A stretch of 64,000 nucleotides of DNA from Ruditapes philippinarum (Eukaryota): positions 62,001-126,000 of the forward strand of contig NW_026867374.1 in NCBI RefSeq assembly GCF_026571515.1, read 5' to 3'. This document shows positions 2,860 through 57,245 of the stretch, piece after piece. The position numbers and the translations under genes were made by a program. How positions within the stretch are numbered: position 1 is the first letter of the stretch; the number at the start of each line of letters is the position of its first letter. The notes beneath the pieces were generated by a model, which had not been told where the DNA came from, searched no databases, and saw only the letters and a list, made by a program, of their open reading frames with translations.

Positions 2860-2943
2860 ATGGAAAAGGACGGTTTACCGCCGCCGTTCCCTTTGACCGC
2901 CGATGAGGCAGCTTTCCGTCTTCCTCCACCTTCTTACGAAGAC
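2860..2943 (+). CDS. Gene A coding exon 1: MEKDGLPPPFPLTADEAAFRLPPPSYED (PPSY)
   Basis: tttcag acceptor at 2854, ATG 2860, gtgagt donor 2944; homologous to 20517-20606. Confidence 0.9.
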
Positions 2944-13880: not shown

Positions 13881-13941
13881 TTGCCGTCATTATGTGTCCA
13901 TGTCCCAGTTTCACCAGTCTTGTAGTTATTTATTCGTTCAG

Positions 13942-20516: not shown

Positions 20517-20606
20517 ATGGAGAAAGGAGATGAAGGACGGTATCCACCAAATGTATTCACGGCCGATGAGGCGGCATTCCGCATTCCACCACCAACTTAT
20601 GAAGAG
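20517..20606 (+). CDS. Gene B exon 1: MEKGDEGRYPPNVFTADEAAFRIPPPTYEE
   Basis: ATG 20517, GT 20607; TADEAAFR shared with gene A. Confidence 0.9.
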
Positions 20607-29483: not shown

Positions 29484-29735
29484 CGATCGAGAAGTTGAGG
29501 ACGTTGACATCAAACCACTAGCTGCTGTGGGTTCGAATCCGAAAGGACTTTGGACTTTTTCATATGACGAAGCTAACCAGCTAGCTTTTGGAACGTCGGT
29601 AGTTCTACTCAGGTACCCGTTCGTTGCTAAAATAACGTATGGAAGGGCACCTGAGGTCTTCCTCCATTATTCTATAAGCTGAATAGTCGCCATATGACCT
29701 GTACTGTGATGGTGCGACGTAAAACCCAACAGAAA
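29484..29735 (+). mobile_element. SINE (5'-degenerate)
   Basis: gggttcgaatcc B-box, 'ggaacgtcggtagttctactcaggt...gaggtcttcctcca...gtcgccatatgacc...gtgcgacgtaaaaccc' body. Confidence 0.75.
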
Positions 29736-31011: not shown

Positions 31012-31250
31012 CGTCAATGGTCGAGATGTTAAGGCCGTTGGCATCAAATCCGAAAGGACTTTTGACTTTTTCATATGACGAAGCTACCCAGCTAGGTTTT
31101 GGAACGTCGGTAGTTCTACTCAGGTACCCGTTTATGCCTGAAAAAACGTATGGAAGGGAACCTGAGGTCTTCCTCCATCATTTCAAAAGCTGGATAGTCG
31201 CCATTTATGACCTGTACTGTGATGGTGCGACGTAAAACCCAACAGAAATG
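31012..31250 (+). mobile_element. SINE (duplicate of 29484-29735)
   Basis: Same body sequence. Confidence 0.75.
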
Positions 31251-33170: not shown

Positions 33171-33290
33171 GAAACACGCAAACACCGCTCTTTTTATTGA
33201 GTTTAAAATCCAATAATCATGTTCATTGTAAAGCGTTAAGAGTCAATGGGGCTATTGTCTTTTACCCGTTTGCCCAGGGATTATAAATTA
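33171..33290 (+). promoter_or_regulatory. Conserved non-coding module upstream of first-exon cassette V1
   Basis: cacgcaaacaccgctctttttattgagtttaaaatccaataatca...gtcaatgg is homologous to 45391-45508; both lie ~500-520 bp before an ATG. Confidence 0.55.
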
Positions 33291-33693: not shown

Positions 33694-33783
33694 ATGGAAG
33701 AGGAAAAGAAGGATGTTAATCTGCCGTCAGAAACTCCGGCCAATGAACATCAATTTCACCATCCTCCTCCAGAATATAACGAG
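33694..33783 (+). CDS. Orphan first coding exon V1: MEEEKKDVNLPSETPANEHQFHHPPPEYNE (PPEY)
   Basis: ATG 33694, 30 open codons, GAG|gttagt phase-0 donor; aligns to gene A/B exon 1 (A[D/N]ExxFxxPPPxYxE). Confidence 0.8.
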
Positions 33784-35009
33784 GTTAGTAATCTAAATAT
33801 TTTTATTTTTTATTTTAGCACAGACATCTTATTAACAGGTACATTAAGTAAGCAATAGAACTTTGAAAAAAGAAGTTATACATACATGATAAGTACATTA
33901 TATTATGACCATTGCACATTTTTATCGTGATGCAGTAAATAAGAAACTATTTTGTATAGGCAACATTTTGCATAAAGCCTGGAGTATGTATTGTCCTATA
34001 GAAATTATAAAAGAATCATATCGTGTAAAAAATATTACACGTTCCCGCCATGAAAGAAATTATTAGAAGATATCAAGAACAAATATTTCAATCGGTGAAT
34101 GGTTGGAATTTAGACTGCTTTTTTCTAGACTGTTAAGAAACGATAACAACGATGTCTAACATAGTAGTACCTGATTTTGTTTTTGCCATATTGAACTATA
34201 GCGTTTTAACACTTGTTACCCTGTCCTCTAAATAAGTCCTTAAGAGTGTTTTCTGTATGTACATTCTATTAAAGTTATTTTGAAATTGCCGTTAAATATG
34301 AAAAACAATGTCGTATCTTTAGGAACACTCCATTGAAATTACAATGTACATAATTAACATATTTTCCATACATGTAAGTGAGTTTGAATTGTATTGGTTC
34401 TGAAAAAAGTACTAGTTTATATCTTAAAAGCATGATGTATATAAATTTATCCTTAAGAAGTAATTGGCAAATAGGGAATTCAAACGTGCCCTTTTATTAA
34501 ACATGACCCCATTTTTTTCCGTTTAAAATGTTTTGTTATCATATTCTAATAACATGCAAAGTTTAAAGAAATTCTATTGAACAGTTTTCATTTTGCTTAT
34601 ATGTCTATATGAAAACTCCGGAAAACGTCTTTAAATAAATTTTAATATTTTTATGTTAAAGCTTGAATATTGCTTAAACCTGTGCTAGAGAGCATAAGGT
34701 GTATTGCGCTTCCCATTTATGGCCATGAATAGACTCAGTCAAACCAAAGTCTTTTTATTCAATGCTATTGATGGATCACTTTTTTCAGACTATGATTTTG
34801 CTGATTTATATCTATATCTTAAAAGATTTATATCTATATCTTAAAATGACTGTGCCATTTTAATGTTCTAATCATAATGCCATGAATTTTTCAGACTTTA
34901 TAAACCAGAGAAAACATGTTGATCATACTTAACGTTTGACAAAACATATTCTACTCCATCAGTTCTCAAGATTGCTAACACGTCAGGCATTTGGTACGTT
35001 AAATAACAC

Positions 35010-35236
35010 CATAATCAACAGTGGGTTTGCGACCAGCATGGATCCAGACCAGCTTGCGCATCCACGCAGTCTGATCAGGATCCATGCTCTTCGCTTACCA
35101 ACTCTTTTACAAGTAGAGAAACTGATAGCGAACAGCATGGATCCTGATCAGACTGCGCATCCGCGCTCTCTGGTCTGGATCAATGCTGATCGCAAACCAA
35201 TTATGTTGGTTGGTTTTGTCATGACGCGGCTCAAAT
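35010..35236. mobile_element. Palindromic MITE, same family as 20766-21006 (left end truncated)
   Basis: gcgaccagcatggatccagaccag...gtcatgacgcggctcaa. Confidence 0.8.
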
Positions 35237-35776
35237 GTGTTTTTATCTTTTTCAATTCTACCTCTAACAAAGTTTTCACATTATTCCTGACACAGCGGTA
35301 TACACCATACTGACAGATAAATAATAGAAACACTCTGTCGGTGTCACTTTTTCGTGTCAAAATCCCAATTATCTTTCTTCGTATTAGTGAAAAGTCACGC
35401 ACTATATCATTTTGAGCTCCTGTTGTACGAGTGTTGCTTATTTACTAAGCAAATAACGGCATAATTGATATTGAATGGACGTAACTTCATAATACAATAC
35501 TGTGTTGTTGTTTCCTTTTTACTATACTAGGAAATAATTTTTGGCATTGCAACTTAGAGATTTTTGTCATGATCATCGATTCGATCAAAATCATCGAATC
35601 GATCAAAACCTTTGGGATATTGTCATGAGAATGTATCTTTACAATTTATTTCAAATTTTGTTTTTGTTTTGTTACATTATTTTAGTCGAAAAAAAATACT
35701 TGTAAAAACTAATGGTTGTCTTCAATGTGAATTTTGTACTCTTTGGTATAATGTACTATATTTACATGCTATTTAA

Positions 35777-36106
35777 AGCTGCATTCTTTCAGATGAGCGA
35801 ATGTTTATCAAGAAATCAAACTTGAAAGAATGTACGAAGTAGAAATTATTAGTGATTTAAGTTATAATTAGTACATGTTATACACGGTAAAAACTGATTT
35901 TACAGTATTTATCACCATATTTCTACTGTGTGACTAACACAGTAATGGCTAGTTTTGCATTTACATTGTATTTACTTTTTTTGTGGTAATTTACATAGAT
36001 ATAAAGTGCCGTTTGCAATGTGTAATTTACATTTTTGTTCACTTCACAATATTTTACTTTTAAACACATTTGTAATGTTCATGAAAAAAGCTGGAACCAT
36101 GCTGCT
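35777..36106 (+). mobile_element. Kolobok-like MITE
   Basis: TTAA|agctgcat ... atgctgct|TTAA; homologous to 8272-8571. Confidence 0.65.
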
Positions 36107-38125
36107 TTAAAAGTATTTTGAGAATAATTGCCGCCAGCTCACGAAATCTGCTTTGCCGAAAGGACAGAAGTAAATAAAGGAAAACATCTTTTTAATATGA
36201 ATCATTTCAGGATTGTCCGTTGTTGCTGATTTATTAATGATGTCAGCGAAGAACTTTAACAACAAATCAGATTCGTTTGTTGCTTACGAAAAGAGGATAA
36301 CAAACCACTTTCAGTTGTTTTATTCTGCTTACTCGGTTTCTTGACGACAAATAGCCAAATTCACGTATTTAAATATTATCGCCCAGCTAATATCGCTTTG
36401 TCGTGCGGTTCCTTGAAGCAGCAGACGAAATTCATATGTTTTTGTCTTGTAGTTTGACGCGTAAGCGCTAGCGAAAACATAAATATACAGTATTTACCAT
36501 AATGTCAGATATCTTGTGGAATTCCATTGCAAAGTTAATGATATTACTTTCAATATTGATATATCACTTAAGGGATGGGATGATGCCAATTTATTGTGTG
36601 TATTATTACAACCCAGTAAAGTATAAAAATGTATACATATTACCAAATCCATTAATGTACATATTGTTGAAGAGGATAATGCCTTTATAATATAATGTTG
36701 CCATTTGCCGAATCAGTAATGATATTTGTTGATGGAAAATAAATGATACGTCATCAAGTGAATATGATTTTATAATTTATTCTGTTAAAAACTGCTTGAA
36801 CCAACGAAATTGCAGCTATTTTTATATAATATATTTTAACATTTGAAATAAAAATATATTATTTTGACTATTTGCTTGATTTGTGCTTATTGCGATGTTT
36901 GCTGATAATAAAGAACAGTTCAGATATGTATGTCAAATGATAACAGGATGTTTTATGCTTATGTTCCTTTTAAAAATGCGCATTGTTAAGTTCAAATAAT
37001 GAAGTATAAAACATATAACCACTTTGAAGGAGAACGCCCTGGTGCTGCCTTAAATAGCATCTGAAAAGCAATAATGTCCAGTCCAGTCCACAAGTTCGGA
37101 TCACCGTTCAAAGTCACTAATCCCCAGAACTCGAGCTGAAAATTGCTAAACCTGTTTGCAATGATAATTAAAACGAAGTACCATAAATTTTTTTTTTCAA
37201 ACCAAGTACACTTAAGATCATACGAGTCTTATACCGGCTGCCGGTACAAATCACAGTATCTGGCTCGAGAATAAGAACGCAATTCATGCATAAAAGGCGC
37301 GCGGGAATGACGTCGTTTAAAAAAAGGTGACTTGCTTACGGGAGGGGTGGGGGGAATATAACAGGTTTTTCTAGCACCGGTGTAAACGGTAGATATAATC
37401 ATGTCTGATATGCAAGAAAATCCAGTCTGATATGCAAGGAAAAACACTATAATTTTGTAATAATGTTGTACCTCACACTATGCGCCACAATCTACAATCT
37501 ACATACCCCCTGGGATGATATTTGTTTTGGGGTTTCTGCAGCCACTATAAATAAAACAACAAACAATTCATTACCTGACACCAAAATGACACAAAAAGTA
37601 TGTCAAATACAGTACATAAGCATTTATTCATCGTAACTCCAATGTGAAAAAAAAATCCAATAATGTTCCTATTGCAATAGACCCAGAGTCAAGTTCTTTG
37701 CTGTATTGAGCTCCTTTTCAATTGATCTGAAATTATATATTCAAAAGGAATGAGAGAAAAACATTACCGTAACTGGTATCGATCCTAAGTACAGATTAAG
37801 GCAGGAAGAAATTTATGTATAGTGTGTCATTATTTGATGATGCCGCGAATATCATCTCATTACAGTGTGCTGTCGTGTGGTTTTATTCAAACATTATACT
37901 TTGTTTTGCTGCTTTAGAGCAGTATTAGTGTTTGCTAATCTAATCAATTGCAGATTTTCGAGTCTGATTAACTAACAATTAGCTTGCGCGTAATGAACGT
38001 GAAACAGGAAAAAGAAATAATAACTTAATCAGTAGTAATAATAGTTTCTGGAAAAAAAACATATAAAAAGGAATATCTATAGAATTGATTTTACTTATAT
38101 CAAGAAAATAACTTAAATTCAAAAC

Positions 38126-38203
38126 ATGGAAGAAACAAGTAGTATGTCGGATGTTTCTGTTGGTGAACCTTCTTATTGTCAACCTCCAGAGGAACATAGT
38201 GAG
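38126..38203 (+). CDS. Orphan first coding exon V2: MEETSSMSDVSVGEPSYCQPPEEHSE (PY motif degenerate)
   Basis: aaacATGG context, 26 open codons, GAG|gtaatt phase-0 donor; YCQPPEEHSE aligns position for position with FHHPPPEYNE. Confidence 0.65.
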
Positions 38204-41200
38204 GTAATTACAAAATTGTTTATTTAACGTTTTACCTGCATATCAATTATTGTTTTAGTTCAATAATATAGTTAAGTTATAATATAGTTTGGTTTAAACA
38301 TATTTGCATTTAAGATATTTTTATATACACATGTTTATATTTTACAATTTAAAGCAAAAGAAATTGGACAGGAGCTACAGTAACTCATGGTAGTTCTCTC
38401 CTTTAATAAAAGCAATACGAACATATAATACCTGACTTATTAGAATTTTAATTAAAGAGAATAGATGAAGAAAAATTAGAAAAGAAATACAAATATGTAA
38501 GTAATTCATGGAAAATAATAGCGAGTAAGATTGGGGAAAGAGGAGAATGCGGATGTTTCTGAATAAAATTAACGTATCATTTTCAATCCTTAAGGTAAGA
38601 ACTTCATGTATGAATAAATGTTTGATTTACGAATACAAACTATGCCACATATATGTATGTAAATAACGGTCACGGAAATTTGTATATATCAAAATAATGG
38701 GGTTTGTTCTTAGTTGAAGCAAAATTATATTGTTTATTAAGAATATTATATATTTCATTACTCTTACAGAACAAGTAAACTTTACAATATTTAATATTCA
38801 AGCAATAAGAAATTATTTCATCAATATAATTAATATCATAATAATGCAAATAATTTTCTCAAAATTTGAGTGACTTTAACACAATGTATACTATGCTGTT
38901 TATACCATGAAGAACCGAAGCACTCACACAAGTCATAACAATATATTTCTGCTCTTCGACAGTTAACTAGTACGTGTGTGCATAAATATTTGTTATTCCT
39001 TTTTATTTTCTTTATGGTATATTTCTCCATTCAAATCTCATTACTTCCAAAAATTAGTTAAAGTTAAACCGCAATGATGACCCTTATACTTGAACTACTT
39101 TTCATTGCGCAGCGTAAGCGTAGCCGTTGATAATGTACTTCTATTTCCCGCGCTTTTTAAAAAATAGTATAAAGTTGCTGGGGTATTTTATGAACTTGTA
39201 GTCAATTACAATATTTCGTTCTTATAATTCTCGTTATTCTAGTATTGACGGCATATACGGGAGTATATAGCCTTCTTGATTTCTCGTCAGCAACTTGTAT
39301 TACTAATAGTGTACGAAGCGTGATGGATTAAAAGATAAATGTATAAACATAATAAATATTATTTTATAATTTATCAATAGAAAATTTGTTCAAAATGCAT
39401 TACAAACTACATGAACGACAACTAAATCTGAATTTTGAAGGTATTACTTAGTCAAGCTTATCAATATAATCTTTAACAATGTTGTTCTTTTGTTCCAATG
39501 GTTTCGAAAACTACGTAATGCGATAAGCTATACGTAGCTGCGCACCTTGGGGATGTTAGATAGTTTCGTATAGCAGAAGTAACCTTTAAATGTCATTTTA
39601 TATCATGTTATCCAAAGAGGGTCCATATTTCATACAAAACAAAGCAATAAATTATTCTACAATGAATTTGTTGTCGTTCTCATATCTACGACGTTAAATA
39701 TTTTATAACAATAAAACAAATAACACAATACAACAGCAATCCATTGCAAACGGGGATTTAATATGAGACAAACATTAAAACCCGTTTTTTATCAGTGCTG
39801 TTCCCCTATATACTGACAATTGGTGGTATAACGGTAAAAGTCTACATTTGATAAGAAATTGTTCAAACATCGATTTATAAGTCCAAATGTGATATTCTTT
39901 GCTGGAAAGCATGCAAACATCTCTGTATAACAAAGTTAGTCGGCTGTTTTGCTGCTATTACATCCCCTAGACAACAACAAATTACACCTTATTGCTCGTA
40001 CCATTAATATCAGGCTTATTTTAGTAATATTATATTATTTATACATCAAGAACTAGAAAATCAATTAGATCAATCAATGTTCATGCGAGACATACTTAAA
40101 ATATGGCGTATTTTTAACCCTTTTAACATAAGTGCCGAATATGGCAGGCCCACTAATTGAGCCCGGTCTACAGACAATTTAATGCAAACCATTCCATTGG
40201 CCACGAATGGACAAAAGTGTCTGTTTTATTGGCTTTTTCCATGTACTGAAGCACTTAAGATACTTAGAAATGGAATAATAATTGAATAATAAGTCATGGA
40301 AAGTATGGCAAAGGTGATGTCGATGTTGAAGATAAAGTTTGCACGTATTGGTTACAGTATACATATTATTTGCCGATACCCTTTCAAAAGTCTGGCCTTG
40401 GTTACAGGGAAATTTTGTTTACTTTTTAAAAGCAAACTGTTGGTATCAAAATTTGCAGAAATGCGTAGACTTCTAAATGGTTTACACTTAATTAAAATTT
40501 GATCATTATCAGAACTTCAAATACTGGTTATCAAGAGAGAGGGAGAGGTGAAAATAATATTTTCAGAAGTATACCTTTTGTGTATGCGGTTTTGCATTTG
40601 GATATCTGAGTTCTTGACCGAAACATCATTCATCATCTCAAGTCCGTAACATGACGTTACATCAGTTCCATGCTGTCTCGAACACTTTGGATGATCCATT
40701 TTCTAGATGGACGCATTGCTTAATTGTACAATAGTCTTTTAAAAGTCACAGTATCATTTTTTCCCTTCAGCTATTTACACGAAGCCACAATTGTGACAAT
40801 TGAAAAACGTCAAAACAGAGTAAAATATTGTGTATTCTGCAAATTTTGATATCATATTTGTCACTATTCTGCTCAGATTTGCCAATCCAAGTAACCAAGT
40901 GCACGCTTTCTTTTGCAACTGAGTATATATCAAAAACAATTTCTTGTAATATGTAGGAGTTTAACCATATCAGATTTCAATAACAAACATTTCTTTTACA
41001 TAAATTTGGTCATATCTGTCTTTAATTTAAGATATTATTAGTTTTACTTTTCATAAATCAGTCTCATTAATCTTTGTCATGCAATACTAGAACAATAATT
41101 ATACTACCATGTACGTTGTAAGTTATACTTAGAGGTAAAAATAAGCGTTATTGTGAAATTGACCTAAATGACAAAAATTGCATGGGTGGAAAAAATGCTC

Positions 41201-44200
41201 TATATATAAGTATCTTTAATATTACAAAAAATGCGTTTCTCTACAAAAACAAGTACCAACAACAGTCAGTTTACAAACAAACCGACATTTTCTTCTGGAT
41301 GACAAAATTATATTAAAACATGTCATCTATATATTATCATTGAGGAATAACAAAAATTAACAATAATTAAAAAAAATATCAATGATAAATTCCCACGATA
41401 GAGTAGACTTATTAATTCTTATCGTAACAACTGAATTAAAGTCACAATGCGTTTTTTCGTTGGGTTATATTTTGCAAAATTAAATGCGTCAAAACACAGG
41501 TATCAAATAATATGAATAAGCTTGAATTCACTTTGTAAAAAGCAATGAAAAGTAACCACAACAAAAATAGGAGCAGCAAACAAACTTAACAACTTGCATA
41601 GAACATTTAAAATTTAAATAATCAAATTCACGGTATTTTGTTCCTTGCGTAAACTTGTCGTTACACTAATAAATACTTAGTATGACTACCACTGTATTAC
41701 CTTTGTTAAAAATGAATTGAACATCCTTTTTTAATTAAGCTTTTAAGTATGATAAATTTGATTTCCTTTCAAATCTATGTCCTTTTCCTGAATCCTTTTC
41801 ATTGATTATTATACTATATTGGAAAGAATAGCCAATTTAACTTGGTATATTGTCTAACAACGAAATTTTATTACATACAGCATTTTTATAAAAGATGGTT
41901 AAGAGTACATACGGTACATCTGTTTATAATAGTTTTTTTTTATAAAAAACACCACAAAAATTGTTAACAGACATAGCTACATATTGAAGTAATTAGTACA
42001 AGTACTGTAAAGATTACTGTCAGATAATAATTAACATGGCAAATTGTTAGACAAATACAAATAAAAAAGACAATATATAGCATATAACATACTTTTTTCT
42101 CTTGATTTGGGACGTTAGATATATAACTATGTTTCTTATTGTTTCTAAATAAACCAGTGTTTTGAACTTTATAGTGGCTTAAACATTCTTATCTCAGTGC
42201 GTCTATTCATATGCACATGACTAAATCGCCATATACATTGAATCGCTGTATTTATTTCAAGTTGATAACATTTTTTTTGTATTTTAGAATGACTTTAACC
42301 TGAATTTCAGCTTAACAGCGTGCTGGGTTTTTTTTTAAAGAAAAACTGAATCTCTTTTATGTCAGAGGCAACATTTGTGGGAAAACATAAATTTCTAAAT
42401 CCTCATAACAAGATTTGTATTGATAAAGTGAAATGAAAGCAGGAGAGTTTATTGAATTTAAATGTTTAGAACATTTTACTGTCCGCTTTTACAGTCAGCT
42501 TTTTACTCTTCTCTAATGTTCATACATTGTTTTGAGAATATATTTTTGTTGGTGATTATAATTTTGAAATCGTATTATTAAAAGTGAAAATTTACATAAC
42601 AGCACGACTTCTTGCAACTTGGGGTCAATTACATTGAAATGTAATGACCTGCATTACATTACAATTCCATTAACAGACCTCTATTCATTATATTACGTCT
42701 TTAAATAAACCCAATGTCATAGAAATGTGAATAGCAAAGTGTTCAACGTATAAATATCACTAGTTATAAGAATACTCGTACTAAATACGTACATTCAAAC
42801 TACAGATAAAATTAATACACAATAAATAAAACAGTTTAAAGTCAAACAGTTTTGAACAACCCAGAGTGTTAGTTACATGTACTTTAAAGCAACACCAGGG
42901 GGTCAAAATCACCTCTCCTTCTGGAGCTAAGAGATACATAAACTCCAGTAAATCGAACCTATTTAGTCGCCGTTGGGTATACGGCGACTGCAATTCTTAG
43001 GCATCAACCTTAAAAAGCAACCCTCAGCCACAAGAGGGACAAACCGTATTACTAAGTGCGTTCTAACACACTATTCTGTAATATATATATTGAATAAAAT
43101 GACAAGTTCTTTGTTACTTAAATGTGAAAACAGTTACGACAGTGTGTTTAAAGAGAAGTAGATTTATAGTTACTTTATATGTCATTTTCCATTTCCTGTT
43201 TAGCTGAATTTTTACTTAGCACACATATGAATTTTTCAGTACCGTCATTACTGAGACGGATTAAACTAACTTTAACATCAGGAAAGATATTTCTTCAAGT
43301 TTTATTGCAAGATGTCATGAATTAATAATTAAAAAAGTAAAATTGTTTTTGTAGAATTCTATGCTGTCGTTCCTCCTTACAAGTTGAATTTGCTCTAAAG
43401 GGCCTTATCCTATACACTAAATACAAGGTGTAATAAAAATAATTAGAAAAGTGTTTGTTGTTCATACTGCGATCTCAGAAACATAAAGCAGATCTGATCA
43501 CAAACCAAACTTTGTTATAAGAACAGATACTAGTATGCAAGTGTTTCTTCTTTTCTCCTTCATCCACAGTATCAAACCATCTACTTTTATGAGTGTGTCT
43601 GAAATTCATTTTGAAGTATTTCTTTGTAAGATGAAGATAATTTATACAATTTACGGTACTGTCAGTAATTTGTTTGTCGAGGAATATTTGTGTATATATC
43701 ATTTAACATTGATCTCCTGTTGATGCAATTGTTTTTTCTAAATTTGGAACGCCAACAATCATAAATAGTTAATTTTCTATCCAGCAAATTGCATAGATAC
43801 ACCCTTGGGATTTCGTTATTATATCTGCTTGGTACTAATACTTTTCTCAACACAGTTATCTACCATCTTCCGAATGGTTTCTATAAGTTTTATAATTTCC
43901 TGTTTGAATAATTTATAATGACATCCCGCCGTTTTTCGGCCGTGTACCCTGTCCTGTTTGGTGTCCTGCTGGGCTCCTTGCCGATGGTCCTGTGTTGAGG
44001 GATGCGTTCGTTGAATGCCTCCTTTCCTTGTTGATCTTGCTTTTCATATTTTACAATGATAGTGTGTCATTTTAAATGCTATAAATTACATGTTTTGTAC
44101 TTTAGAACATGATTGGTCGGAATAAAATCACATCAAAAGTGTATTATAATATCGCATTGTTTTTTTTGTAACTTCAGTCATACCGTTCATCGTCGTTTTA

Positions 44201-45390
44201 AATTTATCTTTAAAGCCTGAACAAATTATATTAGTAACTGACAAATGAACATTTATGGCTTAGTTTCAAGTTCCCAAGATACTAATTGATATAATTTAAA
44301 CATGTCGGTTTCATCTGCTGACATTTTGCTTCTAGTTATTAAAGTCATATAGTATTTTACAGCTCTGTAGAGAGCAGGCACATATACATTTGTAATTCTG
44401 CTTCAATATAACACTGACTGTAATAATATATATGATGAAATTAGATTTAACATATAATAAAAGTGATATCATTGAAAAATGTTATCATTAAGTAAAGATG
44501 CCATGATTTTATTGACTGATATTATTTTCTTAGAAAAAAGTCGGCATAGAAATATTGTGTTAAGTAGGTTTTTTGTCTTGCCTTTATTATACTGTAACAA
44601 CTTATATAGTCACAAACCTTACAAGATTCCATCTATAATATATGAATTATGCAATAGTTTTACCTTAACTATAATATAATTATCAATTTAGACTGTTTTT
44701 CCTAAACATTTTAGCAATATTTCCTAGAATAAAAAAACAACAAATTATTATATCAAAATTTTCTCTCTATATATAAAAAATCAACAAAAGATGCCAATAA
44801 TTAAAAATATAACTAGTTATAAAAACAAATTTTGACGAAGCATTTAAAACATAAATCAAATTCTGCGAAACCATTTTTTTTGAAAATGTATTGCTACCTG
44901 GATGGATTAAGTTGATTTAGAGAATATTTATGGATTTGCTATATCATAAGGCATTGGTCTTGGTTTAATTATCACTAACTCTTCTGTTTTAGTCCACTTT
45001 TGATACATTCACTGGTGAACACAATGTCGGAGAGCAAATCAACTTTAATACCCATTTATTGCACATAACAATCATATTATATTACCTTTCATACTTGGCA
45101 AGATTGCAAGATTGTAAAAAGGACTAAAATATTCATAACGGTTGATGAATTTTTTTTGAATAACCATATAAAACTAAACAAAAGTAGACAGCATGTTGGC
45201 CGTCCGTTACCTCTTGCGTCGCCTCATAAATTTTAACCATTATGCGTGTTGTAGGTCCATAAATGGCAAATGGGTCAAATGGCCTGCATTCAATAACTAG
45301 GAACCTGTACATCAATACATAATTGTTCTCTTCATACACTTTATAATGCTATCTTAGACGACGAGTAGTTCCAATTCACTGTCGTATTAT

Positions 45391-45508
45391 GAAGCCACGC
45401 AAACATCGTTTTTTATTGAGTAAAAATCCCGATAATCAAGTGTTTTGTAATACGCCAAAAGTCAATGCGCTCTAGTATTTTGCCTGTTTATACAGATCAT
45501 CAGTTAAG
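45391..45508 (+). promoter_or_regulatory. Conserved non-coding module upstream of first-exon cassette V3
   Basis: cacgcaaacatcgttttttattgagtaaaaatcccgataatca...gtcaatgc is homologous to 33171-33290. Confidence 0.55.
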
Positions 45509-45889
45509 TGTATTGGATACCTTGATAAAGGATTTACATGATAAAATATCAATTAAAGATAGAGTAGAGAGTATAATTCACTTTAGTCGCGCTAATTTTA
45601 ACATTTATTCACCAGAAGTGTTCATGATTTGGGACTAAAATAAATTATTATAACTAACCTTAGGCCATCGGCCAAGTTTTGAATTATTGTCGGGGATTGT
45701 GATAATTATTCTAAAGTTAACGTTAAAGTTCAAAAGAGATGTTTCTTCAAACTTATGAATTTACATGATTGATAATAAGCGTTTATGATTGTATAGTTCT
45801 CAAAATACATTGGAATAACGTTAAAGAAATCAGCAACAATTTAGATGCTATAAGTGGTCAAATTAACAAGGATTCGTTTAATTAAGACA

Positions 45890-45964
45890 ATGGATAAGGA
45901 ATATTACAAGGTTTATAATCAATCGGATCTACAATTCCGCCATCCGCCGCCAGAATATACAGAG
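45890..45964 (+). CDS. Orphan first coding exon V3: MDKEYYKVYNQSDLQFRHPPPEYTE (PPEY)
   Basis: acaATGG context, 25 open codons, GAG|gtgagt consensus phase-0 donor; QFRHPPPEYTE resembles V1 QFHHPPPEYNE. Confidence 0.8.
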
Positions 45965-47683
45965 GTGAGTACAGGCATATTAACATTTTCATGTAATCAA
46001 CTGATCAACATTACATTAACGACCTATTTTAAAAATGCACGGTAACGTCTGATTCTTAGAAATATATAATCTATTACTCTCTAAAGCATTAATTTACTTT
46101 TAACAAATAATTGTATTAAATAGTTCAATCTCTATCAAAGCTATGGAAGATTTACCTGAGAAGTAATATTCATTCATAATATTGATGTTTTTATTTTGCT
46201 CTCGCAGGAGATGAATTATTACTCTTAGATAAACTCCACTACGTATCATTTTCTTCGACAAATACTTTGTATCGTGGCTAACACACCTTTTCAACACATT
46301 GTAGTAATTAACTTAGTGTTTTAATTGCCCGCATCATAAGAAAAGTACAATAAAATCAGTATGTGTTACATTGTTGTTCTCGTTTGACGTTCAAACACAC
46401 TAAAAATACTTTTTACAAAGCACACATGCCAGTTTGTTAAGTGGTTCATGTAGATAACGGAAACTGTATATTCAATTTCAACGTTTTTCTGTAAATAGTA
46501 ATTATGTTCTTAGTACGGAATCGTAGTTGTTTACAATCGCAGCAAAGTACAGCAAAGTACAATTTGGTAGATGTACAGATTCGATCCACATGTATCGCTT
46601 AGAAAAGATTCTAAATTTAGTTCTGCTGCAGTAAAATAATCATTATAATCAAAACAAATCGTCTTATCTTGAAGATTTTGCAATAAATCTTGATTTACAA
46701 ATTAAGAGGTAGATTTGATTTTGTTTAGCTACCTCTAAATAACTATTACATAAGACAAGAATTGCTGTATTATTCATTGTCCAAGAACAAGAGGTGTTTT
46801 TCTTCTTCTAAATTTCTATAAGGGGTAATGATTGCGGCTGTTAATTAATATTTGATGCACTCAGTCTACATTGGTCGTCCCATGTGACACATTCGCATGC
46901 GCAAATTAAAACACGCAAGGCATAGAAGCATGCAACATTTACTACATTTATGTTCCTTATTGAATAAAAAAAAATCTCCATTCACATATGTTATTTTTGC
47001 ACTCGTGTTTAAAAATATTTGGATATTAAACTAAATATAATGATTTAGAGATAAATATAGGCATAAATATTTCTAAAATAGTTCTAAATTTCATTCGTAA
47101 CGTAGTAATAATTTCAGAAAATGTTTCCAAGTAAGACAACTTAAATATTTTACTTTGGTCAAATGAAATAGGTGATGAAACATAAGAAAACATGTCAATC
47201 TTCATGAAGTAGTAAAGAAATAGCTACTCTTTAAACATTCCCTTCCTTTCCTTTTTGGCTTAAAGTAAGATTAATTCTGGTAAAGAGCGTAACTTTATTC
47301 TCATACAGAATATTCCGAGGTTGGTACAGGAATTTTCGTATATTTGACAATCGTTTAAAAACGTTTGAACTACATACCGCAACATTTGTTTCGCATTTTC
47401 ATAAATCCTAACAAAACGTTTTTTTTTCTCTACTGATAAAGTTATTATTAAATGTTCTGGAGGTAAAGTATCAATACATCAAAGAAAAGAATATTTAACA
47501 ATATCTCATATAATATAAATCCAGAATATTGATAAATGACTTGTGGATGAACGAATATGTGAAGATCCTACCATAGTTTTACAAGGGTCATACTCCCCAC
47601 TTTTATTAAATTATCAAAAACGTTGAATCAAAATTTGGCTGATTCAATCTCCTTCCCGATAATGTACTTTTTATAGACTAACA

Positions 47684-50171
47684 CCCAGCAAACACAAGAC
47701 GTCATACTGATGTCAGATTTAAGTCAGGTTCTGACGTCGGATGACGGTCGGAAAAACGGTTGGATTTGAAAGTTTTTTTGACGTAATAATCTGACGTCAG
47801 GTAGACGTCAGAATCTAACCATTATTTAACCTTTTTCTGACCAAAATCTGACCATTATCTAACCATTTTTCGACCTCAATCTGACAATTTTCTGACCTCA
47901 ATCTGACCATTTTCCGACCTAAATCTAACCAGTTTCTAACCATTTTCCGACCTCAATCTGACCATTTTCCGACCTAAATATTAACGCCTTTTCTGCCCTA
48001 AATCTGATCATTTTCTGACCTTCATCTTATCATTCCCCTAATCCTTTTTGTTTCACCACGTCATCAATATTTTCTGGCTAATCCTGATTTGATCTAATTT
48101 AATATAACTCATTCTATTAAGTAACTTTCCCTCAAATGAAATGTATAACAGAAAACTAAAGCAAAAAATATGTTTCATGCTTTTTTTAATTTAAGATAAA
48201 AGTTGCAATTTTAAGCTGATACATACAATTTTAGTAGATTCTGCAAGGTAAATAATTTTCATAATTAAACAAAATAAAACATAAAATAAGTTAATTACAA
48301 AACAAAAAGTATTACAAAAACAATGACATAAATGAAACTAAGAAAACATGTACAAATATTAAAGAACAAAACAATGTATGCACATTTCTATCAAAGTTTG
48401 CTGTATCAAATAAAACAATGAAAATATTATAATTTTAAGAAAAGTTAAAAGATTCTGATAATAATGTTTCAAGCAATTTATGACAGATTTTCAGTACTTT
48501 AACTATATTTCTACAGCATTTCTAAAACATTTAATGCCATTTTGCATATTTTGACCTCCTTTGATAATTGTCAGGAATGTATAAATTGCTGCCTTTTAGT
48601 TACTTCACAAAGTTATACTTTTAGATATCCATGAGAATTAGCACGAATTTTGAGGTGTGATGCTTTAAGATATGACCTTCTTTCAGCACCCCTCGTCTGT
48701 CCGGAGAATTAATATGTAGCGTTTGTAGCGCCCAATAGCGTGTGTGACATCATTTTCACTGAAAAAAAAAAGAAATTTATGAAACATGTAAAAATAACAA
48801 GCAAAAATGTTTTCATGGTTATCATGGTTATCTTAACTTAATGGACAATTATGCCAACATTTTATAAGAGAGCTTTAACAAAAATTAAAAGTAAACATAA
48901 ATACTGAACATTTAAAAAGCCGCTTTTAAATTCCAGTTTAGTATGGATTAAAGTATGTAATAGAATTTACAAAAATCTTACTTTCATATGTTTCTTTTTA
49001 CATATTCACGTGTTTCCGTCCCTCCGACCTTTGAGAGCATGTCCAACACTTTAACTACCTGAAAAGAAAATTATATTCTAACTTATGTATATATTCTACT
49101 TTAAATATTTCATAGTCTTAAATTAAAGATTTAATGCCGAAATGTCTGGAACCAAAACGTCTTGCGTTATTTGGGACCGGAACGTTTTTGGTTATTTGGG
49201 ACCGAAACGTTTTGGTCCGAAATGCTCGAAATCGTACAAATTCATTCTCAATTCTCAGATTTTAACTGACAAAAACATTACAGTTTAAGAAAAATATGAA
49301 AACTAAATATTCTCTTTGGTAATACTGAAAGGCATATTATAAACTTATCACAAGCAGAGTTAAAACATGTCAATTTTAAAAGGATTTATTATTAGACATT
49401 ATCGCGAATTTGTGTGACATTTTACTTCAGCTGTTCAAATAATGATAATTAAATTTAAGAGTGCTTGCAACCATGCAATTATTTATCAAATAAAGAGTAG
49501 AAATAAATCTAAATAAATTGAACTGACCTTTTTGTTCAAGAAAATCTATAATATTCACTTATAAATGCATTCCAATTCCTGACCGACAGCCAAAACGTAA
49601 CGCCTACGAATTTGAATTTCCATCCACGTGACTTTAGATTCGAATTAAAGGTTAATCATGTTTTCTTTCCCTTTTCTGTCACTAAGATTAAATGTTAAAC
49701 CACTATTAAAAACGCGTTATTTTGATACATATAATGTACCACAAATGATAATATTATGTACAACGTTAAAATTTAAATGATTGGAACTTGTAAACAGATC
49801 TGTGACTATAAATAGCTTTCATAACAATAACACATGTAACTTGCGTATATACAGCGCCACCTATATGTTTTATTAGGTTGCAGCGCCGCGATCTTGGTCT
49901 GTATTTATATAAGAACACTTCATTTGTAATCCAAATAACATTTGAAAAAAGTTTAAATGATTACAACAGCGAATAAGGATTATTTTTTGTTATTTTTTTT
50001 TACCTACCGTCAGGACACCGACCATAACCTGACGTTAGTACGACGTCAAAAAGAAACGTCTATTAGACATCGGTATTTTAACGTCAGATTTACGTCGTAT
50101 TTTGGTCGCCGATGTTGTGACCAAAATCTTACAGTAATCCGACGTTATTTTAACGTCATGTGTTTGCTGGG
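47684..50171 (-). mobile_element. EnSpm/CMC-like internally deleted DNA transposon
   Basis: TIR CCCAGCAAACACA[A/T]GACGT at both ends, 2-bp flanking duplication CA/CA, subterminal ~22-bp tandem repeats (47815-48030), decayed minus-strand exons. Confidence 0.75.
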
Positions 50172-50261
50172 CATGGAAGTAAAGTTCTTTTTTTCAAAAT
50201 GTTATATTTTCGCAAAGTAGCGTTGCAGTATTAGCATAGTGACCCAATTAAAACGAGTCTT

Positions 50262-53200
50262 TCAGTTTCAATTACTGTTTATCAACTATGCTTACCAACC
50301 CTCTTTATTTCAAGATTTATGCATCAACAGCGCGTGAATACTGACTTGATAAGTGTTTATATGTCATCATTAATCTAGTATAGATTCTACAGAGTCTTAA
50401 TCTGTTATAGAACGCATTGATTCCACTATAATATGTTTCTATGTAATTGTAACAATCCCCCGAGAACTATTTCACTGTGAATACATGATTATTTACACAA
50501 TGTTGACAAAGTTTATGTCACTTGGGTCTTTTATAATGGCAATGTATAAGATAGATAAAAAGTGAATTATTTGTCATAAATCAGTATCAAATGAGACAAT
50601 GGGGAAAAACACAACTTAATACAATCATAATACATTTGTGTGATTATGGATATTTGAAAATGAATAAACTGTCCGGGGGATGAAAATGATACAATGAGGT
50701 GATTTTCATATGAATATTTATGAGGCCAGTTGTGACTATGTAAAAAATTAAAAATACGTTTCATAATAATTTTCTTCCTAAACATTACATGTCAAGAACA
50801 TAGATATTTTGATATCTAAGAGCATTTTTAAGAAGGTGGGAAAATATGAATGACTGTAATGAGTAAAATGTAAAAAAACAATGGTTAATTTTCGGTGTCC
50901 TTTGAATAAAATATTTGTACAATAAGCTTTTATCCAGAAAGAGTGAGAAAGAGGAATATATTGAAGAATGTTGTTCTATTTTTCTAAACTGATAATAGCC
51001 CATAAGCATGTAGCAGAAAAAATATATAAATGAAAAAAAAAAAAAACAACAAATCTTGGCAGTTAACATATTTAGCTTGCAATACTGTAAACTATAGTCA
51101 GGCATATTGTAGATCTTTGTAAATCTATAAATGACCCGGACAGTAAACTTGAGTCTTTCATCACACCAGTGTTGACCTAAGAATGCTATAATTAAGATTC
51201 ATTGGTGTCTTATTACTAATATATGTTACCAGGAAAACAAATTAATTGTTGGCGTATCTCTAACATGTTGTATCAATTAGCAAGAAAGAATATCGCACAA
51301 TGTATTAAATATTTAGTCGTAATTATGTTTTATTCCGCTAGCTTCTCATCGGATTATTATCTGATCAAGACAGTTTAATACTCTATCTTCTAATGATTAA
51401 GGTTTCTAGCAGACTTTTTTTCTCAATTATAGACAATGGTATGACCTATAACATAATGTTGACAAAGTCTATGTCACTTGGGCTTTTATAATGACAATGC
51501 ATAAGATAGATAAGAAGTGAAATATTTGTCATAAATCAGTATCAAATGAGACAATGGGGAAAAACATACAATCATAATACATTTGTTTGATTATGGATAT
51601 TTGAAAAGGAATAAACTGTCCGGGGGTGAAAATGATACACTGTGGTGATTTTCATAAGCGAGATTGTGACTATGTAAAGAATTAAAAATACGTTTCATAA
51701 TACTTGTCTTCCAAAACATTACATGTCCAGAAAATGTATTCTTTCATTAAAGCCATATTTCACCTTAAGATTTAACGAATCATTTAGACAATCAGGTCAA
51801 ATGGGCTGTAATCTGATATTTTGATACCTTAGAGAATTTAAAAAGGTGGGAAAATATGAATGACTGTAATGGGTAAAATTTAAAAGAACAATGTTTATAT
51901 TTCGGTCTCCTTTAAATAAAATATTTGTACACAAATATCTTTTATCCAGAAAGAGTGAGAAAGAGGAATATATTGAAGAATGTTGTTCTATTTTTCTAAA
52001 CTGATAATAGCCCATGAGCATGTAGCAGAAAAGATATAAATGAAAACCCAAATCTTGGCAGTTAACATATTTAGCTTGCAATACTGTAAAAAATAGTCAG
52101 ACATATTGTAGATCTTTGTAAATCTATAAATGACCCGGACAGTAAACTTGAGTCGTTCATCACACCAGTGTTGACCTTAGAAACTATAATTGTGATTCAT
52201 TGGTTCTTATAACTAAAATCTGTTACCAGGAAAACAATAGAATGATTGTTGGCTCTGTCTCGTTTGTATTGCTCCAACATCTTGTATCAATTAGTAAGAA
52301 AGAATATCGCACAATGTAGATGTGTATGTTTATTATGTTTAATCGTAATAATGTTATATTCCGCTAGCTTCTCATCGGCTGCTTATCTTATAAAGACAGT
52401 TTAATCATCTTCTCAATGATTAAGGTTTAAAGCAGGCTTCTTTTCTCAATTATAGACAATGGTATGACCTATAAACACAAATATATAACAATAATACGAT
52501 AATACTTAAACTGAAATAATGAGGCTATTAGAAGTGCAAACATGATGTCCCTACCTTTTGATATTACTACTAATAATTTGCTATGATTGTTAACAAATAA
52601 ATCGTGTAGCATTTGGGAAATTCATTTTCAATTCAACAACAGGAATAATTTTTTCGGACTGAAATTTGACCTTTGAGAAGATACAAAGTTTTAGATGAAT
52701 AGCTTTCTTTCCTTTTAACTCATTTGTTCCATTTCAATATTGATAGTGGGTGTATCTATTTCTTTCGAGTATTTAAATCTGCAAATGCATCCCGCAAAAA
52801 AAAATCCGCATATGAAGAAATTGAAAAAAAGTCCGAGTGACACTGGAGATGTTTAAGCACGACACATTATGAAACGCCAGGCCGTCATGATGTTATATTG
52901 CAGTCAGCCAATTTCTAAGTGGCAGTCAGATTATGCATTTTCAAAGAACGTGTAATAACGACGTTTGCACGCGTGATATTATTCGTTAACACACGTATCC
53001 GTCTCCGTATAAAGGTGTGTAATTATATGCATAAATCGGTTACTGACAAAGCATACTTGAGTAACATGAACATTTCAACCACAGTTCAATTACTTTTTAT
53101 CAACTGTGCTTACTTACCCTCATTATTTTTAAATTTATACATCAACAACGCGGGAGTATTGACATGATAAGTGTTTATATGTCATCATTAATTGAAGACC

Positions 53201-55705
53201 TAGTATGGAATTCTACATAGTCTAAATCTGGTAAAGAACGCATTGATTCAACTATAATATGTTTCTATGTAATTGTAACAATCCCCCGAGAATTGTATCA
53301 CCGTGAATACATGATTATTTACACAATGTTGACAAAGTCTATGTCACTTGGGTCTTTTATAATGACAATGTATAAGATAGATAAAATGTGAATTATTTGT
53401 CATAAATCAGTATCAAATGACACAATGGGGAAAAACAAAACTTGATACAATCATAATACATTTGTGTGATTATGGATATTTGAAAATGAATAAACTGTCC
53501 GGGGGATGAAAATGATACAATGAGGTGATTTTCATATGAATATTTATGAGGCCAGTTGTGACTATGTAAAAAATTAAAAATATGTTTCATAATAAATTTC
53601 TTCCTAAACATTACATGTCAAGAACATATATTGTTTCATAAAGTCATATATTTCACTTTAAGATTTGACGGATCATTTAGACAATAATGTCAAATGGACT
53701 GTAATCTGATATTTTAATATCTTAGAGCATTTAAGAAGGTGGGGAAATATAATATGAATGACAGATTGTAATGAGTGAAATTTAAAAACAATGTTTATAT
53801 TTCGGTCTCCTCTGAACAACGTATTTGTACAATAAGCTTTCATCCAGAAAGAGGGAGAAAGAGAAATATATTGAAGAATGTTGTTCTATATTTCTAAACT
53901 GATAATAGCCCATGAACATGTAGCAGAATAAATATAAATGAAAACCCAAATCTTGGCAGTTAATATATTTAGCTTGTAACGTTGTGCTGTATAATATAGT
54001 CAGACATATTGTAGATCTTTGTAAATCTATAAATGACCCGGACAGTAAACTTGAATCGTTCATCACACCAGTGTTGACATTGGAATGCTATAATTAATAA
54101 GATTCATCGGTGTCTTATATACCAAGAAAACAAGATAATGAGTGTTGGCTCAGTCTTAGGGCCCGTCTTCACCTATCCAAGTCTTGAATGCAAGTATCAT
54201 ATTCTCTTGTATTGGATAGTGTAGACACCCTACTTGAATGAGTTTTAAAGAGAAATTATGTGACATTCAAGAAGATAATTCCTTGCAAGAAAGTTAGAAC
54301 ACGTTCTATTTTTCTACAAGTTTTGGCTGTCAAGACACTGATAACACCGGTTTGACACAAAACATGTGCCCCGAAGGTGTGATAGTGTTGTTCTTTTATT
54401 ATTTTCTGACTTTTCTTGTTACTGATTCAGTGTTCATGATCTGTAAATTTTAATAAATGTATAAAATATCTTGGTCAGAGGATCATATCAATAAACTGAT
54501 ACACCAGAAGAGCAAAAAAAAATAAGTTTTTCAAGTAGTCAAAATAGATTTTAAATGATCTTGTTCATTTAGTGAATAACTTTCATCAAATAAAGAATTT
54601 GCATCAATTTATCAGCTCAAAAAAATATTTTTCTCACATTTTCCATTATTTTATAAGAATGTACACATTTCAATTTCATTTGCTCCATTGTTTTTAGCTA
54701 ATTGCATCATTTTCCCGCTTTTTTATTCACATATTTTACAGAAACATGATAGCATTGCAAAGACAAAGGTATAAATCCTGGACAATCTTAATTAGACATT
54801 CCAGTAAAAATTGTGCCTGATTAAATATTGAAAGGGCCATTTATTTAGCTTATCTAAATGTGACATGTAAGAAACTTGAATAGGTGTAGACACGGCCTTA
54901 TTTGTATTGCTTCAACATCTTGTATCAATTAGCAAGAAAGAATATCGCACAATGTATTAAATATTAAGTCGTAATAATGTTTTTTTCCGCTAGCTTCTCA
55001 TCAGATGCTTATCTTATCAAGACAGTTTAATACTCTATCTTCTCAATGATTCAGGTTTCCTGCAGACTTATTTTTCTCAATTATAAACAATGGTATGACC
55101 TATAAACATAAATATATAATAGCATGATAGTACTTAAACCGAAATAACGATGCGAACATGATGTAATTACCCTCTTCTTTTTACTACTATTACTTTGTCA
55201 AGATTGTTTACAAATAAATCGTGTAACATTGGAAAATTCAATTTTCAATCCAACAACAGGAATATTTTTTTAGGACTGAAATATGACTTTTTAGAATAAA
55301 CAAAGTTATAGTAAAAATAGTTTTTTACTGTTAACTCATTGTTCCATTTCAATAATGATAGTGGGTGAATGAATTTTGTACTTGTATTTGCATCAATTCT
55401 GCATATGCACGAGGACCATATTCGCACGAGGACGTATGTTAGCCCAAACCCGCATTGCAAGGGATTGAAAAAAGAGTCTGAGTGACTTTGCAGATGGTAA
55501 AGTACGGTATGTAATTGCTGGAGTCGTCAATAGGTTTAACTGCAGTCAGCAATTTTTGAGTGGCACCAAGATCTTGCATTTTCAAAATAACGGCGTTATA
55601 GCACGTTTTCTTCTCCATATAAACGTGCATAATTTAAACAAAATACTTGTTTAATCGGTTATTGACAAATTATAGTTGAGTAACATGAACAATTCAACCA
55701 TAATA
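50262..55705 (+). repeat. Complex tandem duplication (blocks X-Y-Y-Z-X-Y-Z)
   Basis: Block Y (aatgttgacaaagt[t/c]tatgtcacttggg...ggtatgacctata) at ~50497, ~51455, ~53325; block X at ~50262 and ~53085; block Z at ~52475 and ~55105. Confidence 0.9.
54159..54897. mobile_element. PIF/Harbinger-type MITE
   Basis: TTA duplication both sides; TIRs gggcccgtcttcacctatccaag / cttgaataggtgtagacacggcc; empty site visible in the sister repeat at ~52251. Confidence 0.8.
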
Positions 55706-57167
55706 TAATTCAAACTAAAAGGGTTAAAATTGTAACCAAAATGGGACATTGTATTATGTTCCAGACCCATAACCCACATAAACAAAATCAATTATCAGGC
55801 AATTGCCCAAATAATATCGTAATCAATGTAGCATCACATCTTGTTGACCTGTGTTCTCTCTTATAGCATTATTTCTGGCATTTCTCTCCATTATCAGCGA
55901 TAAAGCTTAATTATCTGCACATCATAGATAATTGACACACAATAAAAACAATTAGCTTATTGAATGGCTATATAATAACATTTACGCAAGTAAGTATGAG
56001 GTAGAAGTTTCACGTGATTGAGTTGTGTTTAATTATTTTATAGGAAATATAGGAATAACTGATTCGTTACAAAAGTTAAAACATGCATACGTTTCTGATA
56101 AAATGAAATTGCAAAATGATATGAATTGGAAAAAAAATCCCTTAAAGATTTTTGAAATTTCATTAATATGATATTAAATAGACAGACAATGTAACACATA
56201 CACAAAATCGCTATCTGGGTAGGTCGGTTAATTGCACTTATTACTGTCGTTACTTAATTTACCCAAACAAATTAAGCCTTCATAATTTTCAACTTTGCTG
56301 TGTAAGCAAACCTTAAATGTTTTGGTTTTGACTATTGATGTAGGTAGAAAGAGATGTAAAGGCCAACGCCCATTTAATAGTACAATTTGTTCAATTTTCT
56401 TATTTGTATTTTTTTTATCTGTCACTAACATGTATAAGTAGATTATTTAATCTACTATTAATTAAAAATAATTGATAAATAATCGGACGCGTGTTGGCTA
56501 TAAAATCCTTTCTGTTGTTATCGTTGTGTATGCCGCCTTTCTGTTACTGTCCAATAATGAATTACGGACATCGACACCTGACAGTAATGGCATGGCGGAA
56601 CGTTATAATAGTTTATACATTGAGTGGAAATAACCAATAATCTTCTGAGCAATACGGAGTGAAAAGTCTGTGATAAACACTTATGTTTTTGTTCTTATTA
56701 TTCAAATCAGTATCAATTGTACACTTTAGTAGATATTGCATTGCGTCACTTCTGGATTATTATATTCAGCGAGTTGTTTTCTAATATCAAGAAATGATCA
56801 ATAATATTTCCTTTTAAAAACATCTGAGCAGAAATCATTTATTTCTTTCAAAATAAAAAATGATGTATTTTAGCATACCATGATGTTGGAGAAATAAAAG
56901 AAGCTTAATTAAGATAAAAATAGTCATTTTCAATATAATTAACAACAGGGACATTACGGTATTTAATTAACAGATATTTTATTTGCGGACATATAAATTT
57001 TGTTTAAAATGAAAAGTGATATAATTGAAATGAAAATGTGTTGGTGTGTAAATTGGGCATAATTTTGTTGTTAAATATTAACTTGGATGTTTTTCACATT
57101 TTTATGGATGTACCGGAACTATAATAAATTTGGAGTTAAACATTAAACTGCACACAAAAAAACTGAT

Positions 57168-57245
57168 ATGGATATCAAACGGTCAAATTCACCTTTCCAT
57201 GTTAATCATTTAAAGACACGAATACACCTACCAGAACTGTCTGAG
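57168..57245 (+). CDS. Orphan first coding exon V4: MDIKRSNSPFHVNHLKTRIHLPELSE (PY motif lost)
   Basis: gatATGG context, 26 open codons, GAG|gtatgt phase-0 donor; RIHLPELSE aligns with RIPPPTYEE / RHPPPEYTE. Confidence 0.55.

Follow-up and report, generated by a model that had tools for sequence, protein, structure and literature searches.

Three tandem first coding exons are probably alternative starts of one gene for an uncharacterised CaaX protein in the clam Ruditapes philippinarum

Sequence comparisons suggest that three homologous exons arranged in tandem on the + strand of a Ruditapes philippinarum contig, V1 and V3 inside the window (the whole stretch of 64,000 nucleotides analysed) and V5 beyond its end, are probably alternative first coding exons of a third tandem paralog, gene C. 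Each of the three has its own ATG and a phase-0 donor, and all of them lie upstream of one gene C body. The same gene in Mercenaria mercenaria is annotated with six interchangeable first exons, which makes it probable that the Ruditapes gene also chooses one start among several. A sequence-only reading had proposed that four such cassettes, V1 to V4, join one shared body; since V1, V3 and V5 are supported and V2 and V4 are not, that architecture is probably right for three cassettes, not for four.

The features of the locus are as follows. Positions are those of the window; for parts beyond the window end at 64000 we use an extended coordinate, equal to the contig coordinate minus 62000. A slash in a motif marks the exon end.

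2860..2943, + strand: coding exon 1 of gene A, a comparator, which continues into its own body up to a CaaX exon ending at 12182
6353-6513 and 18433-18816: stretches of N
20517..20606, + strand: coding exon 1 of gene B, a comparator, which continues into its own body up to a CaaX exon ending at 27123
32701..33201, no strand assigned: homopolymer-stutter patch directly 5' of V1; probably an assembly window left unpolished; unique in the genome
33168..33291, + strand: non-coding module ~520 nt upstream of the V1 ATG, common to V3; candidate promoter or leader element
33694..33783, + strand: V1, intact putative alternative first coding exon of 30 codons, PPPEY intact, donor GAG/GTTAGT
38126..38203, + strand: V2, doubtful cassette; ORF and donor present, family likeness only in the C-terminal PPEEH.E
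45389..45506, + strand: V3 copy of the module, ~495 nt upstream of the V3 ATG, ~71-74% identical to the V1 copy
45890..45964, + strand: V3, intact putative alternative first coding exon of 25 codons, PPPEY intact, donor GAG/GTGAGT
57168..57245, + strand: V4, open frame and donor, not distinguishable from a chance ORF
extended 82755-82844 (contig 144755-144844), + strand: V5, intact exon 1 beyond the window, with ATG and phase-0 donor
extended 85341-85490 (contig 147341-147490): garbled exon-2-like sequence, located between V5 and exon 3a
extended 118975-132761 (contig 180975-194761), + strand: gene C body, exons 3a-10 with CaaX

Gene A and gene B are each complete, with a body over exons 2-10, a CaaX end and an exon 2 that starts in phase 0. 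They belong to a family of uncharacterised PPxY...CaaX proteins of ~480 aa found in molluscs, amphioxus, nemerteans and others, for which the atlas offers only the name 'hypothetical protein'; no Pfam domain was detected on the exons or on full-length relatives. On the 274-kb contig there are exactly five sequences of exon-1 type (A, B, V1, V3 and V5), all of them full length and on the + strand with ATG and donor, versus only three bodies, and no decayed exon-1 relics were found on it.

The four ATG-initiated open reading frames that the sequence-only reading had placed on the + strand of the window, each ending GAG/GT in phase 0, are all present. Among them, V1 and V3 are, by sequence, demonstrable homologues of the first coding exons of gene A and gene B. 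Searched with a profile built from the six Mercenaria exon 1s, A, B and two orthologues, from which the V exons were excluded, 2852 ATG-ORF-GT candidates yielded V1 at E=1.2e-8 and V3 at E=4.5e-4, and V1 matched the exon 1 of Mercenaria isoform X1 at E=6e-8. On the whole 274-kb contig the pattern PPP.Y.[ED]/GT occurs only in the exon 1s of A and B and in V1 and V3; the site FRHLSPEYSW/GT at extended 121700 was taken as chance, being part of a minisatellite element whose copy after gene A has no such site.

V1 and V3 are conserved as islands, comprising the upstream module (about -500, single copy in the genome), a block directly 5' of the ATG and the last 11 codons with the donor, in a background that is otherwise unalignable. 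The last 11 codons differ by 3 synonymous and 2 non-synonymous changes, none of the latter within PPPEY. The sequence downstream of V1 does not resemble that downstream of V3, and V5 presents no match to the upstream module or to the pre-ATG block.

The body of the third paralog, predicted by the sequence-only reading to lie past 64000, was found there on the same strand; it begins 55 kb and ends 69 kb past the window end. Its exons 3a-10 are all open, have canonical AG/GT sites, end in CAIL and are 81-100% identical to their Mercenaria counterparts. No exon 1 adjoins this body; the intact V1, V3 and V5 are orphans upstream of it. The earlier observation that no family body exons separate the cassettes also stood: tblastn with body exons searched singly revealed none between gene B and the gene C body, and a 32-sequence family profile run against all six-frame open segments revealed none either. 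Whole-protein queries were full-length database proteins; short database 'proteins' matching exon 3 were set aside as run-through predictions on genomic contigs rather than transcripts. An exon-2-like word, DLMPKC, at 49128-49166 is a chance occurrence in repeat-like sequence.

The junction between cassettes and body depends on exon 2, because exon 3a starts in phase 2, and a cassette spliced straight to it would be out of frame. V5 lies ~2.5 kb upstream of the sole exon-2-like sequence, which sits at the expected place and carries gene-C-specific residues. As assembled, this sequence has a frameshift, an in-frame stop and neither AG nor GT, and an intact gene C exon 2 was not found elsewhere in the genome. 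It sits inside a sharply bounded 500-bp homopolymer-stutter patch (extended 85251-85751), in which 50% of positions survive homopolymer compression versus 69 +/- 5% contig-wide; total length is kept while heteropolymer has turned into runs, unlike natural decay, and three further patches of 500-950 bp, at 32701-33201 and at extended 79301-80251 and 80901-81801, resemble it. The identity of 58-61% to exon 2 of A and B is what would be expected from ~70% true identity combined with roughly 13% raw-read error. We infer that the garbled exon 2 is probably assembly noise. Counting against the alternative-first-exon reading, the introns would have to be long, spanning 51.6 kb (V1 to exon 2), 39.4 kb (V3 to exon 2) and 33.5 kb (between exons 2 and 3a).

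The orthologue of gene C in Mercenaria mercenaria is LOC123541053 (per-exon body identity 81-100%), which shares a chromosome with two sister loci, LOC123540686 and LOC123540761. Its isoforms X1-X7 (XP_045182602.2, XP_045182390.2, XP_045182468.2, XP_045182533.2, XP_053380415.1, XP_045182668.2 and XP_053380416.1) are automated RefSeq models, known here from their protein sequences. Isoforms X1-X6 do not differ from exon 2 on and vary only in a first coding exon of ~30 residues, and the point where they diverge coincides with the exon 1/exon 2 boundary of gene B; a related bivalve is thus annotated with six alternative first exons on one body at the orthologous locus. These first exons are clearly alike (41-90% identity), with PPxY intact in some and broken in others. 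As proposed for gene C, LOC123541053 is annotated with several ~30-aa first exons of one type that join one exon 2; it differs in having six clearly related cassettes, compared with three supported in Ruditapes. By sequence, V1, V3 and V5 are closer to the Mercenaria gene-C exon 1s (34-53%, 29-44% and 23-40% identity, respectively) than to A/B-type exon 1s (33-40%, 32-40% and 17-20%). The sequence-only reading had known of no description of this architecture in the family, which is only partly borne out: we found no literature on LOC123541053, on gene C or on such first-exon arrays in molluscs, but the architecture is implicit in the Mercenaria RefSeq models.

The use of all four cassettes V1 to V4, with V2 and V4 as highly diverged members, appears improbable. 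Both lie on the right strand and at the right place in the array with phase-0 GAG/GT donors, and the last 10 residues of V2 score 26, second among ~15,600 non-family GT sites. Against this, V2 and V4 rank only 415th and 134th of the 2852 candidates with an enlarged exon-1 profile, neither has nucleotide similarity to any other cassette, and their divergence is at odds with the clear mutual likeness of all six Mercenaria cassettes. The last 10 residues of V4 score 12, a value that 10 chance sites also attain, and V4 gave no hit in the search that matched V1 to the exon 1 of Mercenaria isoform X1. Furthermore, the pattern of an ATG, 20-35 open codons and GAG/GT occurs 14 further times in 548 kb of strand, which predicts 0.94 occurrences by chance in the 37-kb interval and a probability of ~0.24 for at least two. 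On these comparisons V2 may be a very diverged array member, and V4 is probably a chance ORF.

Alternatively, gene C might have lost its 5' end, with exon 2 truly decayed and the three cassettes recently orphaned, so that no family protein is made and an ancestral array still alive in Mercenaria is in early decay here. The broken exon 2 without splice sites, and the lack of another in the genome, fit this reading; we consider it rather unlikely, given that the damage is limited to one sharply bounded patch with three counterparts elsewhere, that its length-preserving conversion into runs is unlike natural decay, that its identity fits read error, and that neither exons 3a-10 nor any of the three cassettes is damaged. 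It also seems unlikely that V1, V3 and V5 are inert exon-1-only duplicates, never transcribed or spliced and open by chance. Such a frame could persist for a while in exons of 75-90 nt, but the flanks have diverged past alignment while ATG, frame, PPPEY codons (through synonymous changes) and donor were kept, three of three cassettes are intact with no decayed copy, and the Mercenaria orthologue is annotated as using such exons. Very unlikely, finally, is that V1 and V3 begin separate small genes whose other exons, unrelated to the family, lie between the cassettes: intervals of 4-37 kb could conceal short exons invisible to family homology searches, yet they contain tandem and interspersed repeats and no open segment of at least 90 aa with coding character, the sequences following V1 and V3 are unlike each other, and in the Mercenaria models such exons lead into the family body.

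If V1, V3 and V5 are alternative first exons of gene C, each cassette would supply a start codon, a disordered N-terminal tail 25-30 codons long and a phase-0 donor. Each would presumably have a separate promoter and would be spliced to one common exon 2 (starting in phase 0 and ending in phase 2) and on to exons 3a-10. The predicted products would have one four-repeat, CaaX-tailed body in common and differ in the N-terminal peptide alone, including the presence of PPxY, which V1 and V3 would supply and V5 would not, with a putative role for the motif. PPxY, the canonical ligand of the WW domains of NEDD4-type ligases, stands directly before the exon 1/exon 2 junction in A, B, V1, V3 and many family members, and is absent from V5 and some Mercenaria cassettes. 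An AlphaFold model of the Mercenaria protein shows disorder in the exon-1 peptide (pLDDT 44-58) and places exon 2 within the fold, so that swapping exon 1 would change a linear motif and not the structure. Foldseek gave no match against the PDB, and VIA-align returned only generic alpha/beta (ferredoxin/ACT/S6-like) matches, with Z <= 5.4.

As a tentative extension, venerid clams may possess a small protocadherin-style first-exon array on an uncharacterised prenylated protein, in which promoter choice might set the presence of PPxY and thus NEDD4-type binding, ubiquitination or relocation, with birth-and-death turnover of the cassettes and an upstream element resembling that of protocadherins.

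To our knowledge, few arrays of first coding exons that are paralogous and mutually exclusive exist apart from the vertebrate protocadherin and UGT1A loci. The alternative-first-exon reading of gene C, if true, would add a second, much simpler example, in molluscs and conserved between two clam genera. It would offer a compact model for how such arrays arise when a promoter and its exon 1 are duplicated in tandem, and for promoter choice that toggles a short linear motif (PPxY) on a constant body. For a conserved animal protein family without an annotated domain, the array would provide a first route to function. For annotation, gene models at this locus would require long-range first-exon joins, and the assembly has noisy 500-bp patches able to mimic pseudo-exons.

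The clustered protocadherins (Pcdh alpha and gamma) resemble the clam locus in having tandem, same-strand, homologous first exons, each with an ATG and a donor, and constant exons downstream. They also resemble it in birth-and-death array evolution, represented in Mercenaria by lineage-specific cassette pairs of 83-90% identity. The variable Pcdh exons are preceded by a conserved sequence element, and Pcdh promoter choice is stochastic and CTCF-dependent. The variable Pcdh exons differ in being ~2.4 kb long and in encoding the entire ectodomain together with the membrane span and some of the tail, whereas each clam cassette encodes 25-30 residues of disordered tail; the arrays comprise 14-22 such exons in Pcdh versus 3-6 in clams. 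UGT1A is alike in that a choice of first exons, each under its own promoter, leads into a set of common exons, and in that the variable part alters specificity while the common part is kept; its first exons, however, encode a folded substrate-binding domain of ~285 residues rather than a short linear-motif peptide. Genes with ordinary alternative promoters, whose two or three first exons are unrelated to one another, likewise alter the N-terminus through promoter choice, whereas the clam first exons are paralogous copies in a tandem array, a far less common arrangement.

The contig carries genes A and B, confirmed as tandem paralogs with about 10 coding exons each, followed by a third paralog, gene C. 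The sequence-only reading had taken four short ATG exons downstream of gene B (V1-V4) for alternative promoter-plus-first-exon cassettes of such a third paralog, whose body is indeed present beyond them. The analysis covered the entire 274,334-bp contig (window G000:C15861:62001-126000, + strand; N runs only at 6353-6513 and 18433-18816), with the following features, extended coordinates being contig positions minus 62000:

2860-2943, gene A coding exon 1
end at 12182, gene A CaaX exon
20517-20606, gene B coding exon 1
end at 27123, gene B CaaX exon
33694-33783, + strand, V1
38126-38203, + strand, V2
45890-45964, + strand, V3
57168-57245, + strand, V4
extended 82755-82844, V5, a new exon
contig 147341-147490, the only gene C exon-2-like sequence, 2.5 kb 3' of V5
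contig 180975-194761, gene C exons 3a, 3b and 4-10, terminating in CAIL and a stop

Gene C exons 3a-10 are each open and each carry AG/GT sites. From 27.2 kb to extended 118.9 kb, exon-wise tblastn revealed no homologues of exons 2-10, and a 32-sequence family profile, applied to the full set of 15,400 open segments from a six-frame translation of the contig, detected no family body exon in the same interval. Exon 3 is single in gene B (22088-22384) and split into 3a and 3b in genes A (4669-4860 and 5689-5814) and C, reflecting either an intron lost from gene B or one gained by A and C. Gene C exon 3a has a locally duplicated acceptor region (contig 180895-181005; extended 118895-119005), in which a decoy copy bearing its own AG precedes the real acceptor by about 70 nt.

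Several repeats were also noted at the locus. A macro-tandem repeat (28145-32061; three units of about 1.5 kb, 73-97% identity) separates the end of gene B from V1, and units spaced 1.0-2.8 kb with 79-95% identity, carrying matching minus-strand open segments, occupy 50384-54087. A satellite with nested 145/425-bp periods lies at 59963-60844 and a minisatellite with about 10 copies of a 22-bp unit at 61911-62127. A ~540-bp element (62001-62540) has hundreds of genome copies at 98-99% identity, often alongside an inverted partial copy, and has the appearance of a young and highly active repeat. A Ser/Val/Leu-rich minisatellite, open in several frames, recurs after gene A (12955-13972) and in the gene C exon 3b-4 intron (extended 121530-122703), and a ~225-bp palindromic MITE-like element in gene B intron 1 (20783-21005) and 1.2 kb 3' of V1 (35010-35234), its two copies sharing 82% identity and matching on both strands.

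Besides A, B and C, the genome contains a single further family body, a distant fourth member on a different contig, indicated by weak similarity to exons 3, 5 and 8 at G000:C5844:159742-163881, minus strand. With gene B exon 3 as query, phmmer retrieved some 50 relatives from 1.84 billion representatives, among them full-length sequences of about 480 aa. Databases name the family only as "uncharacterized" or "hypothetical protein", and no Pfam domain was found in it. Gene C is most closely related to Mercenaria mercenaria LOC123541053 (81-100% identity per exon), whose 90% cluster contains RefSeq isoforms X1-X7. In an alignment, X1-X6 share every residue encoded from exon 2 onward and differ only in their first ~30 residues; X7 begins in exon 2. 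The point at which they diverge matches the exon 1/exon 2 boundary of gene B. Two sister loci lie on the same Mercenaria chromosome, indicating that the three-gene cluster is conserved. The AlphaFold model of the Mercenaria protein (P0054; mean pLDDT 84, pTM 0.84) is composed of four helix-plus-sheet repeats, with exon 1 disordered and exon 2 within the fold; Foldseek gave no match to it, and VIA-align gave only generic ferredoxin/ACT/S6-like matches (Z <= 5.4), which are uninformative.

All four V frames were found exactly as first described, but only V1 and V3 are supported as members of the putative array, where they are joined by V5. An exon-1 profile based on A, B, two orthologues and the six Mercenaria first exons, leaving the V exons out, was applied to all 2852 "ATG, 18-45 codons, GT" candidates from either strand. 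Its best hits below A and B were V1 (E=1.2e-8), V5 (E=2.4e-4) and V3 (E=4.5e-4), with no other candidate under E=2. V1, V3 and V5 are also closer to Mercenaria gene-C first exons (best identity 53%, 44% and 40%, respectively) than to A/B exon 1, and the only four sites on the contig with the motif PPP.Y.[ED] directly before GT are those of A, B, V1 and V3. Among the six Mercenaria first exons, PPxY is kept in three and broken in three. When the profile was enlarged with V1, V3 and V5, V4 ranked 134 and V2 415. Chance could account for such frames: the bare pattern (ATG, 20-35 codons, GAG|GT) has 14 further occurrences in 548 kb of strand, giving 0.94 expected in the 37-kb interval (P(>=2) ~0.24). 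The sole argument for V2, a weak one, is that its final ten residues come second among ~15,600 non-family GT sites; V4 has none comparable. Each is single copy, with an interspersed repeat beginning 60-85 bp past its donor. Across all open segments of the contig, with neither ATG nor GT required, exactly five exon-1-type sequences were detected, every one full length, and no decayed exon-1 relics.

V1 and V3 are alignable only in islands: a 120-nt upstream module ~500 nt 5' of the ATG (71-74% identity, single copy in the genome), a block right before the ATG, and the last 11 codons plus donor, which contain three synonymous and two non-synonymous differences, the latter outside PPPEY. Small as these numbers are, the pattern is that expected from selection on a promoter-plus-exon cassette.

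Exon 2 of A and B runs from phase 0 to phase 2; because gene C exon 3a starts in phase 2, the cassettes need an exon 2. The single gene C candidate carries gene-C-specific residues and, as assembled, a frameshift, a stop and neither AG nor GT. It sits in a patch with abrupt edges (contig 147251-147751; extended 85251-85751) with a homopolymer compression ratio of 0.50 versus 0.69 +/- 0.05 contig-wide, where heteropolymer is replaced by runs of all four bases with length unchanged. Three similar patches of 500-950 bp, likewise with sharp limits and a ratio of about 0.50, lie at 32701-33201 (just upstream of V1), extended 79301-80251 and extended 80901-81801, and all four are probably unpolished long-read assembly windows. 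The identity of the candidate to A/B exon 2 (58-61%, versus 72% between A and B) fits an intact exon with raw long-read error. Such patches can mimic pseudo-exons.

In the proposed mechanism, every cassette would have its own promoter, and the resulting transcript would join that cassette to exon 2, followed by the constant body. All products would have one prenylated four-repeat alpha/beta body in common, and the sole variation would lie in their disordered N-terminal peptide, which contains PPxY when encoded by V1 or V3 and lacks it when encoded by V5. PPxY is a ligand of the WW domains of NEDD4-type ligases and CaaX directs prenylation, roles that they may have in the gene C protein.

Taken together, these data suggest that the earlier proposal of a protocadherin/UGT1A-style array is largely right for V1, V3 and the new V5. 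The alternative-first-exon design is already implicit in the Mercenaria RefSeq models; a literature search found no published description of it.
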